A stretch of DNA of 57,805 bases from Dicyema japonicum (lineage: Eukaryota > Animalia > Dicyemida): contig RDEW01000049.1 of assembly GCA_011109175.1 (NCBI GenBank), forward strand, positions 341,887-399,691. Direction: 5' to 3'. The notes below the pieces were generated by a model. The model was not told the DNA's origin and ran no database searches. It worked only from the letters and a program-made list of their open reading frames with translations. Positions 1-41,930 of this stretch are shown here, in pieces. How positions within the stretch are numbered: the first letter of the stretch is position 1; each line of letters opens with the position of its first letter. The position numbers and the translations under genes were made by a program.

Positions 1-871
1 CTTAAGAAAGATATACGCATAGTCTTGGAATTCTAAGATGAGTTCTTTATTGCTGACGATGGCTTTCGATTTGTTTTATGTTTATCTAACGTCAAATGTT
101 CAAAAAAAATTCAGTTGATTCTCATGTTCTTTAAAACATCAGAACAATTTGCGTATAAAATTGTTAATACAGTCCGACTTCAATTTAAAACGGAGCTCGT
201 GGCGGGAACACCTCAGATTTTGGAACACTTTGTAAGTTCTCTCCCAAAAATATTGAAAACTTCGATGTGGAACTGAATTTATTACTATTTTTATGTCTAG
301 TCATTAATAAAAAATTAAATATTTTTAAATAAAAATCTTCCACATAAATCATTACGAGTCTTGGTTACGAAAAAAAGTTGAAATTGCTCGACAACTCATG
401 GAAAATCATTCAACAAAGTACTTGTTCGGAAATATGAAACGAGTATTGCCGCAATAGCTGGAATAAAAAAACGATGATGTTGCAGATAACCCGTGGGAAT
501 ATTATTTCAAATTTTTGAACTCAAACAAAAACTGATGATTTTTTTAAAACTTTGGATAGTAAAATTCTCGACACATTTCAACATTTACGACTTCAAAATA
601 CTCCAGTTTCTGGTCCTCTTATTAAAAATTGGTAATTTTGTTTTTTATACATCTTAAGCTATGAAAATTGCAACTAAATTGAGCTTTACAAGCTTTAAAG
701 CATCTAATGGATTTTATGTCGCAATGTTGAAGTTTATGTATTTCATTTGCCAATCATTGATAATAGTATCGAAAGTTTGGTAAAATGTTTTTGTGAAATA
801 ATTAAAAATTGCTAGGATAATACCTTAGGAATGAAATACCTGTTGTGTTTGATAATCTGACGGATGATGTT

Positions 872-3800
872 TTTTTACATTTAGAAGTTTATTTTATTAA
901 ACAATAGAAGTCAGGTAGATGCCGCCCTCACTGTGTGGCTGTTCCCTCTCAAAATTGCGAGCGAAATTCGCTCAAATAGCCAGCGGCGTTCACGGAGATC
1001 TCCAGTGCATGAAGTGATCCGGTTTCCAAGATGTCCGAAAAACTCGAGTGTAGAGGGGAGTAGGATCCGGAAGTCTCCATAGCAAGGGGAACAAATTTGA
1101 CATCATCAGGAAGGTCGACGTATTTAACGAGTTTGGCCTTTTCCGCCTTTACGGATGCTGAACAGGCCCTTGTAGCACTCTCGTGAAGATTTTTCTGGGC
1201 GAACGTGTCTGTACATGTCACATCCCAAACCAATGTTACTCGAAAAGTCATCGTCTAATTGCTCTGCCTGCAACATGAGCAATTTGAGAAAGTTTGGAAT
1301 TTCTTGTTCTGCCTGTGGAGTCTTCTTTCACTTCGGGTGTTTGAAGCTCTCTCATGCCTCTATCCGTGCTCTTGGGGTATGGCACTGCCGCTCGTGCCTT
1401 GGAATTGGTTAGGGGTTTCTTAATGGTCACGCGAGTGCATGTACTTCCGGGGAAGACCTTTCCCATTTGGACTCAGATTCGCTGCTCAAAATTATCAATA
1501 AACGCCGGTCATCGAGGAGTATCCCGGTGAAGATCCCTAAAGCAGCCCGCCCCCTAGCTGCTGAAGCCTTAACCAAAGCAATCGACGATGCACTCCACTC
1601 CGACTCTATAAACGACTGGATACGTTTGTTTAATTTTGCTCCTTTCGCTCTTGGCTCTTCCAGAGATCGCAATGGGAAAGAGTCTCTCTCGATTGAGATG
1701 AAGAACAACATCCGCGCATTTATGGATGGAACTCACTTTACGGACCTCACGTCTTTCTGCATCCGATCAACTGAGACTCGGAGTTCAACTCGGGAAACGG
1801 AGATTTTCGCCTAAGAAGGACCGTACGATCGAAGTTGCTTGAAGGAGGTACCCGATCCGCATTGAAGGCCCTCTCACTTTCAGATGGACCACGCAATCCA
1901 ACCATTGATACGTACAAGACTCTATTAGGGAAACATCCACCCTCTCCGAATGACCTACACCATTGCTCGCCCCCATCAGAATTGACCCTTTTGACCACGT
2001 CGCCTGAGGATGTCATCACGGCGTTATGGAACTTTGCACCAAGTAGCTGTGGAGGTCTCGATGGCTCAAGGCCCGTTCATCTTAAAGACCTTATTTCACC
2101 GACTATTGGAGACCAAGCAAGTCGTCTTTCATACTCACTCATTTTCTTATGAACAGGATATTATCTGGACATTTGCCTGATTTGATACGTCATATCTTGT
2201 TTTCGGCTAGTCTGATTGCCGTCGACAAGAAGGGAGGTGGAATCCGCCCGATCGCGGTCGGATTCACTTTCAGAAGACTAGCAGCCAAGATTGCTTCCAG
2301 ATCTTGTCAAAATCCTTACTTCCCAGTCAAGTTGGAGTCGGAGTTCGTCTTGGATGTGAGGCAGCCGTTCACTCCGTCAGAAGATTCAGGAACAGCAGCA
2401 TTCAAGACTTTAAAAGGCTCATTATGGTAAAACGGGACATCAAGAACGCTTTTAACAGCTTAAGAAGAGACTGCATTCTGGAGGCCTGCAAGGAAAGATG
2501 TCCGTACATATTTGAACTGATCAATTATTCATACGGAAAACCTTCATAACTATTGCACAGGGATTTCATAGTTCCATCGTCCTCAGGTGTTCAACAGGGC
2601 GACCCCCTCGGACCACTGCTGTTCTCCCTCGGCATTGAGAGGATCACGAAGCTCTCTAGATGCCCACTCAACATCTGGTACCTCGATGACGCTGTCTTAG
2701 GAGGTCCCCCGGAAACGGTCTTCCAGGACTTAGAAGTACTCATCCCCGCGCTGTCCGAGGTGGGTCTTCAGTTGAATATAACGAAATGTGAAATAACAAA
2801 CTGTGGTCTTGCTGACGATGACTTCTCTTCAATTGTTCAAAAATTTTACTCCTTGTATCCCGGTGGGATTTCGACCCCTGAAAATGAATTGATTTTTCTT
2901 GGATCCCCGATCACTAGTAATGCGATGAAGCATGTCCTCCTTGACAAAAAACGACTCCTATGCGATTCGCTGGAAAGATTACAGCTGCTGGACTTGCACA
3001 CAGCACTATTCCTATTGAAAAGAAGTCTCAACATCCAGAGAATCTCCTATCTACTAAGGACAGCTCCATATTATTCTCAACTGGAGCTGCTCGAGAATTT
3101 TGATTTGTCTCTCCTCAGCTCGACGGAGCAAATATTTAATGTCCGATTCGACGATGATACATGGATGCAGGCTACACTCCCAGTTAGATTCGGGGGTCTT
3201 GGAATCCGTCGAACTTTGGACGTCTCACTTCCCGCTCATTTATCATCACTCACGGCCTGCGAACCTTTGGTCAGGAGGATTCTACACTCCCCACCCGAAT
3301 TCTCAACTGACCAAGAGATAATCCACGCACGAGAAGCCTGGAATGCCACCAACCTCCCCCTGCCTCCTTCCCAAGATCGCCAGCGAAACCTGGACAACTT
3401 ATTATGCTGGAAATCATTTGGACTCTTACAGGAATCTGCCAATCAGCACTGACGCGCTTGTTTGCTTTCGGGGCTTCCCCTGAGAGCGGAGCTTGGCTAA
3501 ACGCCATCCCCAATGGAGCTTTGGGCACTTTTCTGGATGATGAATGCGTTAGAACTGGTATCTCTCTGCGGCTGGGACTAAAAGTATGTGTACCTCACCC
3601 GTGCCGATGTGGCACCCTGATAGACTGCTATGTCCTGCACCCTCTCGCCTGCAGGAGAAGCGCTGGCAGATCCCAAAGGCACAAGGCTCTGAATGAAATT
3701 GTCAGGCGAGCTATGGATGCTGCTGGATACTCGGCCATTCTTGAACCGGTCGGGTTATGCAGAAGTGACGGGAAACGACCGGACGGGATGACCATATTTC

Positions 3801-3908
3801 CATTTGAGGCCGGGAAACCACTGGTTTGGGATGTGACATGTACAGACACGTTCGCCCAGAAAAATCTTCACGACAGTGCTACAAGGGCCTGTTCAGTATC
3901 CGTAAAGG
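872..3908. mobile_element. CRE-clade non-LTR retrotransposon CRE-A with twin-priming inversion (3' piece 872-1232 on -, inverted 5' piece 1233-3912 on +)
   Basis: PHD finger, RT (QQGDPLGPLLF, WYLDD), LPVRFGGLGI, HPLACRRSAGR..RH, RLE motifs KRPDG and LVWDVTC, terminal RGNSH. TSD CGGATGATGTT at 861-871 and 3909-3919. AATAAA and short A-tail on - strand. Several frameshifts. Confidence 0.92.
1233..1412 (+). pseudogene. N-terminal C4HC3 PHD finger of CRE-A ORF
   Basis: CSAC-x10-CSAC-x4-H-x2-C...WHCRSC. Confidence 0.8.
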
Positions 3909-4380
3909 CGGATGATGTTATAGAACAAATTGTTGACGAAGAATTAGAAAGTACGGAAGGCAGCAATAATGAATAAATTTTTTATAACGGTATGCAAAAT
4001 AAAAAGACGACGATCAAAGAAGTAGTATAAAAATTAATGAATTAACAGAATTAGTTCTAAATATTGATCCAAGTACGTAATAGGATTTTTACTGCTTCAA
4101 ACAAAATTTTTCAGTAGTTTAAAGAAAAACAATGGATGTGGAAATATAATTGATGATTAATTTTCAATAAATAATGACTTTATAAGACTTTCTTGCATTA
4201 ATTAAATTATTAAATTTAAATTGGTTTTAATTTTTTGACAGAACCTCGGTTTTTGGAACATGCTCAGTTTTTGGAACACTTGTGTTGTAAATTTAAGTTC
4301 AACTGTACAATTCTAGGTCATTCGTGTAATTCAGTTCAAGCAATATTAACTGAATCAATCAAAGTCGATTAGGTAATAAA

Positions 4381-4830
4381 AAGATAACGGAAGCTTTTGT
4401 AAAAGCAAACATCCCGCTATACAAATTAAATAATGATTCGATCAAAAAAAGTGTTTATAACAATTAAAATTAACATTCCGTCCGTATTTCCATGCAGAAC
4501 TGCGGTTAAGTTTTTTGCAGAAAAAAAGATAAATGAGTTGACAAATTATTAACGTATTAAAATTTATTTTTAACTTTCAGAAACGAAAATATTTTTAAAA
4601 TAATTGATGAAACAGATATACGAAGGAAAAGTTTTGTAGTGATTCTAAATGGAAGCATTCGTTTTCCAACAAAATCCTATTTGGTTGAATGCAAACCACT
4701 GGAAAATAATACTACTGCTGTTATCATCTGCTAGTTAATAGATGACGTCATTAGAGAAATGAAGATTATTCGTAACAATCATTATCTATTAATATCTGAT
4801 GCTTACATAAAAAATCTTTATCAAAATTAC
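4381..4830 (+). mobile_element. Degenerate hAT-type (CGGBP1-related) transposase remnant
   Basis: Fragments KITEAFVKANIPLYKLNND, IIDETD and LLISDAY across broken frames. Confidence 0.45.
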
Positions 4831-30358: not shown

Positions 30359-32625
30359 TTTTATGGTTTTATTATAAGGAAAAAGAATAGTTAATTTTAA
30401 TTATTCAGCTGTTGGGAGATGCATAAGCTATTCCCACGGACAACAGCCGACGAGAGCCTCTCCTTGAGCCATCTCGTCTCACGAAGATCACCAGTTTTGT
30501 CGGATAGTAGTTTTCCAAGATGATTCAGGAACTTCAGCGTTTTAGGGCCAAAGTTCCCCGAAGTTTCAATCAAGACCGGTGCGAAAATGTACCTGTCGCT
30601 GATATCCGAATATTAGCATTTTTCTTCCTCTGCTTGAGAAGAAGGTCTGCCCGGTGAATTATTTTTTTTGCTTGGGGCGAAAGAGCAGACACAGGTCACA
30701 TCCCATACAAGGTTTCGCCCTCGCTCAAAGGAAAGGAGGTCATGCCGTCAGGGCGTCTTCCGTTGTCAAATAGACCAGTCGGTTCGATCCGGCAACGGAA
30801 TCCAGCCGATTCTAATGCCCTCTTAATGATGCCGTTCATTGCCGAATGTCGAGAAGATCTGCCAATTCCGCTCCGGCATGAGAGGAGGTGGAGACCCAGT
30901 TCGTCCGATAGACAGCCACATTTGCACTTCGATTTGGTGCAAACAGGCAATCCGAGGTGTAGACATACAGCTGTACGAAGGAGTCATCATCCAACAATCC
31001 ACCAACTTCTTGACATGGGTAAACCCCAAGCCAAGATCCATCAACCGCCTCCCTCGAATTTTGGAAACAGTCCAGGCGATGTCCAGAGAGCCGGCTGACT
31101 AGGTTGGATGCCAGAGCATTCCATCTATGGATCATCCAAGACGATTGTTGGTCTGGATTACGCGGCTCGCTAAGCCCTTCACTCCGCCACACGTCCATGT
31201 ATTCAACCAAGTCATTGGACAGTTTCCGAGATGGAAGCTTTGAAAGAATTGAGTCCACTTGGTTTTTGCATGAAAGTTTTGAGGCAAAATACGCCGGGCC
31301 AGCAATTTGGCAGGGAGTAGTAAGACCGATTCCACCCAATGATATCGGTAATTGAGTCTGTATCCATCCAGGGGTGTCAAGGAAACGTTAAGTACGAATT
31401 CAGTACATCTTTTGAGGCAATTATTAAAAAGGGAATCACACTTATAACATGGTGCAGTCCTTAGTAAATAGTTTAATCTTGGAATGGACAAGCAGTTTCT
31501 CAATAGGAAGAGGGCAATATGGTTGTCAACATGCCGCAAACGGGTCTCAAAAGTACCGAGCTCTATTGTCCTTTCTTTAAACACGTCCACAATTCGGTCT
31601 TCGAATATAGGAGAACCAAGGAACAGAGACTCCCCAACTGGAACCGATGCATAATTTTCGAGAGTGTATTTAAACTGGTCATTGTAGAAAGTAGTCAGAT
31701 CGGGACTCAAATTGATCTTGATTAATTCACATTTGGCCTTGTTGACAGAAAGGCCAATCGCTTCGAATTCAGATATCAAACGACGCACGTCCTCCAAAAC
31801 TGTATCTGGATGTCCACCAATGATTCCGTCATCCAAATACCATAAATTTAAAGGTGATTTTAAGCATGCGGCTACTCCATGGATCCCCAAAGCAAAGAGA
31901 AGAGGTCCAAGTGGGTCGCCTTGTTGAACACCAGTTCGTGATTTAATGATGGCATCGTGGAAAACCAATGATGATGGATTAGAATATGAAAGGCGAACAA
32001 TCTCCCAAATATGTGGTAAATTTTTTTGGCATAACTCCAATAAATGATCTCTCCTTATGGAATTAAATGCGTTCTTAAGATCTACTTTGCAGACAACAAC
32101 GTCCTCTTTGCATTGGACGACGACGTGAAAAAACTCCTCACTGCGTGGACACAAGCCTCTGCACCGCCACGAACTCCAACGCCCATCTGTATAGGACTGA
32201 AACTAGGAAGTAATCTTTGAACCCCAGAAAAGCAAGCGACTTTAGCTGCAAGTCTCCTAAACACGTTTCCAATAGCAATCGGTCTGACACCGCCGTCAGG
32301 CTTTCGGAGAGCAACAAGATTAGCAGAAAATAACATATCTCGACCGAAAGGAGACAAACATCCAGAAAGAATTTTGTTGATCAGTTCGCAAATAGCGTTC
32401 GAAAGATCCTTTCCGACAGATCCCATCATTGGAGCTGTGAGATCACGTAGGTGACCGGGTCTCAAGCCATCGATACCACCTCCACTACTAGGACGAAATG
32501 AACGCAGGGAGGTGATTATATCTTCGTTAGAGGCGAGCAATTGTTCCTCGTGGAAAGGTTTTATAGTTCTCAAGTCTTCGGGGGATCCGGGGTGTTTTTC
32601 TCGTAAAGACATGAGCGTTTCAGGG
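30359..32625 (-). mobile_element. CRE-B, 5'-truncated
   Basis: GGGIDGLRPGHL; GGVRPIAIG; QQGDPLGPLLF; WYLDD; HLLSCRSG; RRPDG; TSD AACGTGTTTA at 30349-58 and 32626-35. Confidence 0.92.
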
Positions 32626-32731
32626 AACGTGTTTAATATTTTATTTTTAATAAAATGATTAATTTTTTGGTTCTTGTCAAATAATTATCGCCACTTTCCT
32701 GTAACAAATTCAATATTTAATTTTTTTAGTT

Positions 32732-35700
32732 TTTTTAACAATTTTTTTAAATTTTTTTTTCGTTGTTGTCGTCGTCGTTAATATATACAGTTCTCTCTCT
32801 TATTATCTATTCATGTCTGTTTTTTATGATGTACTACACGAAGACACCTCATGCAAAGGGTGCAGAGTATCTAATTCTCGCAAGTTGCGGGATTCGTTGT
32901 TCTGTATGTGTTGGTTACTACCACATAGGTTGTGAAAAATTATCCAAGAAAATTGCTCGATCACTTCCCTCGTGGTCGTGCCGGTCATGCCGACTGGAAC
33001 TCACTAAAATTGAACCTCATGATCATTTTGTGTCATCATCATCTGTATCAGATCTTCTGGAAGCCATGTCTCCGGAGGATTTTCTGGTTTTATTATCAAA
33101 CACGCGACAAAAAAAGATTATCCCTGTCAAGATCCCCAAGGCTTCCCGGATCTCAATTGCTTCTGCCCTTTCTTCTTGCATTGAGAAAACTGTGTCCAAT
33201 GGCTCGAAAAAGGATTGGATGGTTCTTTTCTCTTTCCCTGTCCTGGCTATGGGGTTAGAGCGTAAACCTGCCCATCTTCTCGGAAACCCTCTCTATCCCA
33301 TGTCCTGAAGAAGCGCGTGATTGCCTTTATGGATTCATGGGAGTCCCTGGCTGAAGAATTATTTGTTTCACCAGTTGATTACTTCCCAAAGTCCAATTCC
33401 ACACATCCAGTATGGCTCCTGAGAGGCTTCGCTCTCGTGTCAGGAGGAAATTGATGGAGGGCGATCTTACTGCTGCAGTTCGAACTGTTTGTACGGATTC
33501 TGACCCGGTGAAAGCCACTCAGGAGACACTCTGTATATTGGGACAGAAACATCCTCCTGAACCAGAAGACTTTTGTAAACCTGTTCGTCCAGAACAATCT
33601 ATGCATGATATTTCCACTTCAGCCATTTACAACGCTCTTTGTTCTTTCCGAAGAAGTAGCAGTGGAGGAGTTGACGGTCTCAAACCTGGCCATCTGTCAG
33701 ACTTGGTGTCCCATTCTGTCGGCAGGCCTGGATCGCTACTCTTGGAGCGAACCCGGGATCTCGTAGCTCGCATGCTTTCCGGAAACGTTTCCGATTTTGG
33801 TCGGAATCTCCTCTTTTCGGCGAATCTAACGGGCCTTGGAAAGAAAGATGGTGGTATTCGCCCCATTGCAATTGGAAACGTATTTCGACGTTTATCCGCA
33901 AAAATGGCTTGTCGTTTTGTTATCTCCCGAATTTCAGCCGAATTTTGTCCTTCGCAGCTTGGTGTCGGAATCAATGGCGGCTGTGAAGCTGGGATCCACG
34001 CAGTGAGAGAATTTGCGTCACAATCAGCTGAATTGAATGTTGAGGACAGAGTTTTATTCAAATTGGACCTCCGGAATGCCTTCAATTCAGTCAGAAGGGA
34101 CACCGTTCCTTGATACCTGTAGGAGGAGGATTCCTCAGATTTATCCCTTTGTATATCTCGCGTATTCGGATCCATCCCCTCTTGTTTTTGGCAGTGGAAT
34201 TATTTCGTCCGGATCCGGAGTTCAACAGGGGGACCCACTCGGTCCTCTTCTATTTTCCTTGTCTATCGACCATATTGCCCAGGACCGTTGCACTCCACTG
34301 AACGTCTGGTATCTGGACAATTGTATTCTCGGTGGAAGTCCCGATGATATTCTCTCCAAAGTTGCATCGATCAGACGTTTGTGTGGAAAAATCGGTCTGG
34401 AATTTAACAATGAAAAGTTCGAAGCAATTAATCTGAATTTGAGTTCCGATTCATTCTACCTTTTTCATAGAAAACTCTGCGAATCATCCCAGGGGTTAGG
34501 GAGACTCATATTGATTCTCTCGACTTCCTTGGGTGTGGGATTTTGGTAAACCGGGTGAGGGAGTTATTGGAAGGCAAGAGGACTAATTTACGTCATATGC
34601 CGACAGGATGAGTTTTTTGGACCGTCATGTCGCCTTTTTTATGCTGAAGAATTGTCTCCTTCTCCAAAACTCCTTTTTATTCTACGGGGATCCCCATGCT
34701 ACGCCGAAAAAGATCTTCTATCGTTAATTGATGTGGATATCCGGTCAACGATGGGGTCCATTCTTAATGTTTGTTTTGATGATTTCGGATGGTTACAGGC
34801 CTCACTCCCTGTAGCATACGGTGGTTTGGGTCTTTCTCTTTCTTCGGACGTTGCTTTGGATGCCTATTTATCTTCATTCGGCTCGTCAAGGCGTTTAGTA
34901 GATACGGTCCTTCACTCTACTTCCGGACTAAACGTACCGTTGACGCCGTCGGGAGCCTGGGATGAATGGATGAATTTGTACCTGAATGCTCCGGCCAATT
35001 GTGATAAGCAAAAGTCCTATTTGTTTTGTCTCTTCGAAAAGAAAAAAAGACTCCTTTGAAAAGACGGAATATGTAAGAAGGCTTGCCTGCCTCAAAACAG
35101 CCAGTTGTCACTCGACGGGGGCCTGGATGAACGCTTATCCATCTGCCGAAATTGGAAACCTGTTTGATAATGAGTTTGTGAGAATAGCTACCTCTCTTCG
35201 TCTTGGTCTTAAATTGTGTACCGAAAGAAAATGCCGCTGTGGACGTTGGATCGATCCTTTTGGTTATCATCTTTTGTCATGCAAGGTGAGTGCGGGTCGT
35301 TTCTCCAGGCACTCCTGTCTTAACATGACATTAAAGAATTCCCTTGCCTCTGCTGGACACCATTGCCTGTTAGAACCTGCTGGTCTTTCCCGAAACGATG
35401 GAAAACGCCCTGATGGGATGACGACTTTTCAATTCGCCAACGGACGAAACCTGATCTGGGACGCGACGTGTGTTGATACTTATTTCCCGTCTAATTTGGT
35501 TGCTTCTGCTTCGGACCCAGGACATGCTTCAAAGCAGGCCGAGGAACGAAAGAGGAGGAAGTACCAGAGAATTTCGGAGGAGTATCTTTTTGTTTCCATT
35601 CGCGGTTTTAACAATTAAACAAATGTCAGTTGAGGAAGCCTGCTGCGTGGATTGCGAACGAGTTCCCTCGGAGTATGGGTATTCCAATCTTTTGTCTTAG

Positions 35701-39781: not shown

Positions 39782-41930
39782 TTTTTTTTAAATAAACCAA
39801 ATTTAATAATGAAAATTAGGCAATAATTAGGACGACAGAATGGCGAAGGCGTTACCTCTGATAATCGCCATTTCGAGCCTCTGCCTCAACCAGAGTCCCT
39901 CCCGTGGCTCGTACCTTTTTGAGGCGAGTTTGCTTCCAATGCTGTGGAGAAAGGCTTCCGTCTTCGCGCCTACAGTTCCAGTTGTCTCCACAGCAATGGG
40001 GACGAAATGGTAATGATCTCCAAAGAATTCGTACTTATGGATCTTCTTGACCTCCGCCTGGTCGGCTGCGTCTCCAGGAGAGTACGTCGCCGTCAGCAAT
40101 CTGGCTCCTGAGAAGGTGTCCACACACGTTGCGTCCCAGACAAGTGATTTTCCGTGGGACTATGGGAATAACGTCATTCCATCCGGCCTCTTCCCGTCGC
40201 CTCTGTCTAAGCCCAATGGTTCCAATTGGGCCGGAAATCCCGCAGCCTCAGGGCTCGAAAGATGATGTCATTGAGGGCTGCGTGGCGCGGGGCTCGACCA
40301 GCACTCCGTCGGCAAGAGAGTGGATGTAATCCTTTCGTATCAACGTCCCCGCCGCAACGGCATTTGTGTCTCTGGCATATGTCCAGTCCTAGGCGCAGTG
40401 CCACCCCGATCCTCAAGCTGTTTTCGTCAAGGAGGGACCCCAGATGTGGGCAAGGTAAGGCCTCGAGCCAGACTCCATTTCCGCGATGTGCGGCTGACTT
40501 AATGCTTGCTAGTCGGTGTTGATTGGCGCTTTTCTTCGCGGCCTCTAAAGTGCTCATACATGCGATTGAGTCCCAACTCTTCTGGCAAGCAAAGTTCGAC
40601 GGGAATTCCAAGTCCAAACTTTGTCAAGCTCCGAGTCCAAGGTATGTCCGGTTGCGTTAAGTAGGACTGCTTGGGCCAAGTGACTGCAGCTTGCAAGGGA
40701 TGAAAAGTAGGCAGGCAGGGCGGCTTCAAGGGGGATCTTAACCCAATGCCCCCATTTCTCGCAGGTTGTTTGCACATAGTCCAGCCCAGAGCATCAAATT
40801 TGACATTTAGTATTGACTCTGCCGATCGTCTCAGAGTCCCATCAGCCGACAATAGTGTATTCCGGTGTTCAAAAAATGGTGAACATCTCAAAATGTACAT
40901 CATCTTCGACACGGAAGTCCATTTCTTGAGCAAACAGAAAGACACATGTGGATCCAAAGATGATACTCTCTTTGTAAAGGCTTCAACTTCATTGTTCTTA
41001 CTGGTGAGGAATTTTTCCAGCTCGTCGTTCCGAGAGGGCAGCCAAGGAAGTGTACCTTGTCCAAGGAGGATTTGCTGAAACCTGGAAGTAGGGATCTGAA
41101 TTCTTGGCAGTAGAAAAGTTTGGAAATGAGCAGGAAATATTGATCAGTTCCGATTTCATAAAGTTGACACTTAAACCCAATTCGTTTAGAGTTGGAATGG
41201 TTGAAGGAATATCCTGATATACGTTCTCCCATGGGCCGGCTATTGTAGCGTCGTCCAAGTACCACAGGTTGAGTTCACAGTTTATGCTTCGTGCCACTGT
41301 GTCAATTGTCATTGCAAAAAGCAAAGGCCCTAGAGGGTCTCCCTGCTGAACGCCTGTGCGTGAATAAACAATATCGTTTCCGTAAACTAAGGCTGAGTCC
41401 GTCCCATACGATAAGTGTACAAGTCGGCCAATCTCCGGAGCTCTCTTCCAACAGGTTTCCAAAATACATTCTCTCCTCAGCGTGTTGAGGGCATTTGATA
41501 TATCAATCTTCCGGCCTAGCCTTTGGGTCTGAGAATTATTGTTGTTGAAGTAACTCCTCGCGGCGTGGACTATTGCCTCGCAACCGCCGGTCACTCCTAC
41601 CCCAAGTTGAGTCGGAATCAGCTCTTCAGCAACATTGTGGGAGACTCTCCTGGCAACGATTTTAGCAGCAAGCCTTCAAAGTATGTACCGATCGCAATTG
41701 GGCGGACACTTCCATCTCCTTTTCGGAATGCCAATAGATGTCCACAAAAAAAAGGTCTCTAGCAAATTTTGGAATATCACCATTAACTATTCGAGTGAGC
41801 AGCAAGGTGATAGACGTAACAAGGCACGGCCGGTTTCAGCAGTAGCTTCAGAAATTAAATCCTTTATATGGCTTGGGCGCAGTCCGTCCAGGCCTCCGCA
41901 GCTACTGGGTGCAAGAGTCTCTTCGGTCTT
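39782..41930 (-). mobile_element. CRE-D, 5'-truncated
   Basis: QQGDPLGPLLF; WYLDD; HPLSCRRSAGR; FVPIAVETTG; RGNAFAIL; A8 tail; no TSD found. Confidence 0.9.

Follow-up and report, generated by a model that had tools for sequence, protein, structure and literature searches.

We analysed a window of 57,805 nucleotides from the genome of Dicyema japonicum (contig RDEW01000049.1, positions 341,887 to 399,691 of the forward strand; contig C322 in our survey), near the left end of which lies a retrotransposon copy whose 5′ part is inverted relative to its 3′ part. Positions 872-3908 of the window form one 3,037-bp insertion, bounded on each side by an 11-bp target-site duplication (TSD), CGGATGATGTT, at 861-871 and 3909-3919. 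The GC content is ~50% in the insert and ~27% in the flanks. The inserted DNA belongs to a family of non-LTR retrotransposons (LTR, long terminal repeat) with a C-terminal restriction-like endonuclease (RLE) of the R2 type. We consider it probable that the insertion represents a single retrotransposition event completed by twin priming, in which both 3′ ends of a staggered target break would prime complementary DNA (cDNA) synthesis on element RNA.

The left part of the insertion (872-1232, minus strand) is a 361-nt 3′ piece of the element, 96% identical to positions 3000-3336 of our coordinate reference, which is the natural copy L003 and not a consensus. Read from the left TSD copy inward, it starts with TTTTT (872-876), an A5 tail on the minus strand, or with seven T residues when the TT that ends the TSD copy is counted. 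An A/T-rich tail segment specific to this copy follows, with AATAAA on the minus strand at 889-894, and then the conserved 3′ end of the family (...CTTCTATTGTTTAA), the 3′ untranslated region (UTR) and the last codons of the open reading frame (ORF). The right part (1233-3912, plus strand) is a 2,680-nt 5′ piece, 97-98% identical to more than 15 long copies. It lacks the tandem-repeat 5′ UTR of the family, being truncated exactly at the ATG of the ORF (1233-1235), and it terminates at CGGA within the nuclease domain; several stops and frameshifts interrupt its ORF. The two pieces form one continuous sequence in canonical copies and overlap by 91 nt in element coordinates (mapped on L003, the 5′ piece corresponds to 1501-4190 and the 3′ piece to 4097-4436).

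In the window this overlap appears as an inverted duplication with arms at 1142-1232 (minus strand) and 3822-3912 (plus strand). The repeat as detected covered 1142-1235 and 3819-3912 (94 nt, 97%), the last 3 nt of which are the junction, leaving 91 nt proper. The arms differ at two sites, at both of which the left arm has the bases usual in the family. The right arm carries C at 3874 and T at 3897, where 31-36 other copies have G and C. Since both mismatches are private to the right arm, the arms fit one template sequence that was mutated later. The 5′ ends of the two pieces meet at the inversion junction, 1232/1233; canonical copies read ...GGAATG/TTACTCG at the junction sequence and ...CCAAACCAGTGG on the other strand. 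At the right end of the insertion, ...GTAAAGGCGGA is followed by TGATGTT (3900-3919), whereas the 3′ piece of this copy has AAAGGCC after it (reverse complement of 1130-1154). The first four nucleotides of the right TSD copy, CGGA (3909-3912), are therefore common to element and target, and this 4-nt microhomology presumably marks the second priming site.

The first-pass annotation, made from the letters of the window alone, had described this layout as a unit at 861-3919 with an 11-bp TSD, a 361-bp minus-strand 3′ piece with AATAAA and an A-tail joined to an inverted 5′ part of ~2.68 kb, and a 91-bp inverted duplication with two mismatches. These coordinates hold, and the duplication is exact. 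Its two proposed pairings are also borne out: the TT at one TSD end adjoins the T5 at 872-876 and is complementary to the A-tail, and the TCCG at the other is complementary to CGGA at the point where the inverted piece stops, beyond which canonical copies continue with AAAGG and the window continues as target. What it had called a complete twin-priming signature is present at the locus, namely one TSD pair, an A-tail at one end, a flipped part at the other, overlapping pieces and a single insertion.

The insertion interrupts a dispersed, degenerate repeat of ~1.1 kb, the two parts of which lie at 168-860 and 3920-4313 and which has 35-40 matches in the genome at 80-90% identity. In nine paralogs the matches to the left and right flanks overlap by exactly the 11-mer. 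The uninterrupted site (...GATAATCTGACGGATGATGTTATAGAACAAATTG...) with a single 11-mer was found in L052/L058, L054, L059 and L060, and with substitutions in L062. The empty site anticipated in another repeat copy thus exists in paralogs with one 11-mer, not two, which indicates that 872-3908 was inserted as a single unit and was accompanied by an 11-bp duplication. Copies of the host repeat show internal deletions and no recognisable protein domain, and L052 (contig C24) has ~760 bp extra between its repeat-matching parts, including fragments of reverse transcriptase (RT)-like ORFs. The proposal that the flank is a pogo transposon, with a reading frame restored when the flanks are rejoined, was not confirmed. 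Nine ORF pieces from the flank, which are short, gave no Pfam match at E values up to 1 and in particular no pogo domain (HTH_Tnp_Tc5 or DDE_1), and only ~35 codons are open across the rejoined site, with no long ORF. The flank could be a decayed pogo element.

Evidence from reads consisted of Logan contigs from short-read runs. One sample, with contigs from three of its runs, covers the left junction, 871/872 (~600-917). A Logan joint on opposite strands, connecting 1180 to 3873 with 52 ambiguous letters, was set aside as uninformative on the locus; colinear copies elsewhere produce the same joint.

We surveyed the genome assembly (67.5 Mb, 377 contigs) for further copies of the element and obtained more than 50 long matches at 96-99% identity. 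A 22-mer from the 3′ end, with up to 3 mismatches allowed, gave 151 matches, 116 of them exact, and a control pattern gave none. These ~150 3′ ends are spread over many contigs, in unrelated flanks and with varied duplications. Many copies are full-length with a precise 5′ end. The canonical 5′ UTR, upstream of the equivalent of window position 1233, consists of tandem repeats of ~38 nt (TTTTCGCCTATTGAGAYTATTCYCCTATTCTTGA-like) with a common terminus, CGTGTTGTCG...; the number of repeats differs between copies (L002-L025). The 3′ ends carry an A/T-rich segment of variable sequence, placed after the conserved ...TTGTTTAA and ahead of the A-run. These segments differ and are common to subsets of copies (e.g., ATTAACCTTAAAAA...), and those of L005, L027, L039, L041 and the window (877-897) look like source-lineage tags or 3′ read-through. 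Parts of the assembly are scaffolded; one copy, L024 (C246), contains an assembly gap (an N run, giving 34 X in translation). Clear duplications of 8-15 bp were found in 18 copies, with A as the first base in 17. Duplications of this length that start with A point to 3′ overhangs of ~10 nt, with a first primer that ends in T and is able to pair with the A-tail, and they make the window's 11 bp ending in TT typical of the family.

The element protein was characterised from the window and from other copies. A PHD finger is encoded at 1260-1397 on the plus strand (PF00628, E value 2.8e-7) and was also found in L004. The RT domain (RVT_1) lies at 2235-2850 on the same strand, with approximate limits and a broken frame in the window copy. 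Natural ORF fragments of other copies matched RVT_1 at E values of 3e-15 to 8e-15, and an RT profile search of the PDB placed R2 proteins at the top (E value 1e-21). Window positions 3584-3912 (plus strand) encode the N-terminal two thirds of the RLE domain, with its CCHC, RH..N, EP, RPDG and WDVT motifs, and the remainder is encoded in the 3′ piece. Thirty homologs, which come from several groups of animals, all retain the CCHC, RH..N, EP, RPDG, WD.T and K motifs of the C-terminal 226 residues (invariant columns C47 C49 H59 C63, R72 H73, E94 P95, R105 P106 D107, D123 T125 and K153). The domain aligned to residues 932-996 of R2Bm, ending at the R2Bm PD motif (E value 0.022). An AlphaFold2 model of it had a predicted local distance difference test score (pLDDT) of 91.4, and a Foldseek search of this model against the PDB returned R2 proteins as all of the top seven matches (E values 2e-6 to 3e-5), followed by Prp8 and PD-(D/E)XK nucleases. 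In the 745-aa N-terminal ORF of L004, Pfam found the PHD finger and RVT_1, plus sub-threshold C1-type zinc-finger matches over the PHD region, and in the 815-aa ORF of L020 it found RVT_1 only; neither ORF had the apurinic/apyrimidinic endonuclease (APE) domain, Exo_endo_phos. The invariant motifs, the R2Bm alignment and the predicted fold support the RLE-type assignment made in the first pass. The family is thus a young, dispersed, poly(A)-tailed non-LTR retrotransposon with a PHD finger, an RT and a C-terminal R2-type restriction-like endonuclease.

The more specific label of the first pass, CRE, was not confirmed. Like the window element, the CRE clade (CRE1, SLACS, CZAR) is RLE-type, but its classical members reside in spliced-leader genes, whereas the ~150 3′ ends of the window family are dispersed in unrelated flanks and its protein has an N-terminal PHD finger. 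Homologs 40-47% identical occur in barnacle, Lepidoptera and octopus records, and the sole link to CRE is the automatic name of the barnacle homolog (43% identity), "Retrotransposable element SLACS protein". The literature yielded nothing usable for choosing among Ambal, Hero and CRE, and membership of the CRE clade is not established. In homologs P0008, P0009, P0022, P0037 and P0042 a ubiquitin-hydrolase domain (PF00443) lies N-terminal to the RT, and others have PHD or zf-C4; N-terminal modules therefore vary within the RLE lineage of the window element. Elsewhere in the window, at 31132-34113 and 40998-41594, there are other ORF fragments with RT domains (RVT_1, E values 1.7e-12 and 3.5e-10), the DNA of which is unrelated to the family.

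The half-flipped topology recurs. It was present in four of 40 distinct long loci, the window and loci L019, L030 and L004, and the three others likewise have TSDs and junction microhomology. The window copy combines its 11-bp TSD (CGGATGATGTT) with the 4-nt microhomology CGGA, an overlap of 91 nt and a flipped piece that starts at the ATG. L019 (C168) has a 12-bp TSD (GATGACTAAGTT), a 5-nt microhomology (GATGA), an overlap of 66 nt, a T12 run and a flipped piece that reaches the true 5′ end. L004 (C312) has a 12-bp TSD (AATTATTACACT), a 2-nt microhomology (CT) and an overlap of 84 nt; its sense piece is only ~140 nt long, and its flipped piece is nearly the whole element up to the true 5′ end. 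In L030 (C327) the TSD is ~5 bp (ATATT), the microhomology 2 nt and the overlap 4 nt. In all four copies, then, the flipped piece starts 4-91 nt from the stop of the sense piece in element coordinates. At 0.25 per base, the joint chance of microhomologies of 4, 5, 2 and 2 nt is ~1.5e-8. Where the flipped piece extends to the full-length 5′ end, the inversion junction contains extra nucleotides, an A8 filler in L019 (L019:1358-1365) and TT in L004 (L004:4339-4340). The strand tables of four internal markers gave no further flipped case among the matches listed. Two pairs of exact 3′-end motifs face outward (G000:C79:196106-196892, 765 bp apart, and G000:C334:1716693-1717231, 517 bp apart) and resemble short copies joined head to head, such as would arise if each of the two target ends had primed on an A-tail.

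From this anatomy a sequence of steps can be proposed. Two nicks 11 bp apart would open the target and leave 3′ overhangs. The overhang ending in ...GTT-3′ would pair with the A-tail and prime a first cDNA of ~361 nt, and the overhang ending in ...TCCG-3′ would pair with CGGA inside the RNA and prime a second cDNA, which would extend 2.68 kb toward the 5′ end and stop at the start codon. Once the cDNA ends had been joined through 1 nt of homology and the gaps filled, the insertion would have its 5′ part flipped, carry the 91-nt inverted duplication and lie between the copies of the 11-bp TSD. We infer in this scheme that RT extended from both ends, that the nicks fell in this order, which enzyme acted and that one RNA molecule was used twice. 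One RNA at one site is favoured by the near-abutment of the pieces in four copies and by the two flipped pieces whose end coincides exactly with the RNA 5′ end.

Twin priming and the 5′-inverted insertions of mammalian LINE-1 (L1; LINE, long interspersed nuclear element) were reportedly described by Ostertag and Kazazian in 2001. As in L1, the window family combines one TSD pair (10-17 bp in L1) with an A-tail at one end and, at the other, a flipped 5′ part with 2-5-bp microhomology, and in element coordinates the pieces either adjoin or overlap. L1 also has short homology at the inversion junction, where the window copy has one fitting nucleotide and L019 and L004 have extra bases. Microhomology of 2-5 bp occurs in ~70% of 5′-inverted L1 insertions (PMC2912911), and the window and its three counterparts (2-5 nt) lie within this range. 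The likeness has limits. Unlike L1, which has an APE nuclease, the window element has an R2-type restriction-like nuclease and no APE domain. Flipped copies make up ~10% of the long copies in the window family, compared with the ~31% of human and chimpanzee L1 insertions that are 5′-inverted (PMC2912911), and, unlike in L1, three of the four overlaps are 66-91 nt long. In human cells, 5′ inversions were seen only for L1, apart from one Nimb-2_DR insert, and were linked to 10-20-bp duplications, with the LINE species and the host argued to be what they depend on (PMC4245944). A relation between L1 twin priming and second-strand synthesis has been raised as speculation only (PMC6895275).

Several observations weigh against the twin-priming interpretation. 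The rate of flipped copies is low, at 4 of 40 long loci and none among 20 3′ ends sampled in contig order (L031-L050, 15 of the 20 shorter than 1 kb). At the inversion junction the homology amounts to a single nucleotide, A1232, which fits both sides. The 91-nt overlap means that both cDNAs copied the same stretch of RNA, and overlaps of 66-91 nt would need either strand displacement or two RNAs; one and two RNA templates leave the same sequence. RNA priming and the microhomology-mediated capture of a separate cDNA would likewise look alike at the sequence level. None of 30 loci of the family contains an intact ORF, and the genome is rich in candidate sources of APE-type machinery, with at least 150 scored PF14529 matches among 1,271 candidates, some in open frames longer than 1,000 aa. 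The first-pass annotation had also looked to reads for support at both insertion boundaries, and here the support is one-sided: the left junction is spanned as described above, and no listed Logan piece spans the inversion junction (1232/1233) or the right junction (3908/3909).

The absence of an intact copy and the wealth of PF14529 candidates bear on one alternative, in which polyadenylated element RNA was inserted in trans by the machinery of an APE-type LINE, as with processed pseudogenes, and produced the same geometry. Twin priming would then be uninformative on RLE enzymes. Such insertion would fit the L1-like hallmarks of the family, which comprise poly(A) tails, duplications of 8-15 bp with A as the first base, 5′ truncation and 5′ inversion. 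The ~150 3′ ends of the family (96-99% identity) and its many full-length copies, which have precise 5′ ends, are, however, far more than passive retrocopying would be expected to produce, and the RLE catalytic motifs are invariant in the 30 homologs. The hallmarks are the same in every examined copy, so that no second mode of insertion is visible that could be called the RLE's own. Duplications of such lengths are also compatible with an RLE, as LINEs of this type with 9- and 13-bp duplications (R8 and R4) are already recorded (PMC6895275). We regard insertion in trans as unlikely.

A second alternative accepts target-primed synthesis but has it abort at ~361 nt, after which host microhomology-mediated end joining would have captured, in reverse orientation, a separate cDNA or DNA copy of the 5′ part. 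End joining, too, is marked by microhomology such as that at the two joints (4 nt and 1 nt), and R2 proteins in human cells yield aberrant antisense 5′ junctions, termed "snap-back" (PMC11371274). These PRINT products resemble the window in that an RLE-type protein is involved and the upstream junction leads into antisense element sequence. They differ in that snap-back gives an inverted duplicate of sequence already present (PMC11371274), whereas the flipped part of the window copy is made of sequence missing from the sense part. An origin of the window copy by snap-back was accordingly rejected, since only the first cDNA is re-copied in that process and the 361-nt sense piece lacks 2,589 nt of what was flipped. 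Against capture in general, the 4-91-nt spacing in all four copies is what one RNA at one site would give and not what random capture would, and in two copies (L019 and L004) the flipped piece runs exactly to the RNA 5′ end. Such capture is improbable in our judgement.

A third possibility is that the structure is not the product of one event, having arisen by two insertions independent of each other or by inversion in a later recombination, or that the assembly is wrong. It would draw on the repetition of the family (more than 150 times), on the gaps in the assembly (the N run in L024) and on the two junctions without a read-derived contig among those listed. We consider it very improbable. 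The 2.68-kb piece lacks a separate 3′ end, tail and duplication, and a single empty site with a single 11-mer accommodates the composite exactly. A simple post-insertion inversion was rejected because it would give neither the 91-nt duplication nor, in four loci, a breakpoint exactly at the boundary of the insertion. Contigs of three runs contain the left junction, and an assembly error is unlikely because the composite matches one empty site exactly and because three loci run parallel to it.

In enzyme type, the closest comparison is with R2. Like R2Bm and R2Tg, which were its best sequence and fold matches in the PDB, the element has a single ORF in which the RT is followed by CCHC and PD-(D/E)XK nuclease motifs; unlike R2, the family has a PHD finger at the N-terminus. 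R2 is specific for 28S ribosomal DNA and makes blunt or 2-bp staggered cuts (PMC6895275), whereas the window family is dispersed and A-tailed, with duplications of 8-15 bp. In the R2 model, the second strand is cleaved after first-strand synthesis and a template jump (PMC6895275). The RLE LINEs R4 and R8, with duplications of 13 and 9 bp according to PMC6895275, would share with the window family staggered nicks and 3′ overhangs of ~10 nt. Unlike the window family they are site-specific, and our literature search gave no report of 5′ inversions for them. Nor did it give any report of a natural 5′ inversion or of twin priming in any RLE element, in agreement with the first pass, which knew of none for CRE elements; as the search covered few subscription journals, this is weak evidence. 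The window family, which has an R2-type nuclease, shows repeated, cleanly bounded 5′ inversions with L1-like microhomology; twin priming has so far been described almost only for mammalian L1. On this comparison, what permits twin priming would seem to be the exposure of a 3′ overhang of ~10 nt and not the nuclease type.

[quoted passage not shown] The window copy and its three counterparts thus bear on the timing of second-strand cleavage in RLE LINEs and should be of interest to transposon specialists. More than 150 young copies in a 67.5-Mb genome offer a natural data set for models of RLE integration. We put forward tentatively, as possible rather than likely, that the RLE ribonucleoprotein of this family cleaves both strands 8-15 bp apart before first-strand synthesis ends and can prime on its RNA from both 3′ ends. 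If so, RLE LINEs would be able to cleave the second strand without having finished the first cDNA, which the R2 model makes a requirement, and the recurrent overlaps of 66-91 nt would record strand-displacement synthesis by the first RT past the second priming site.

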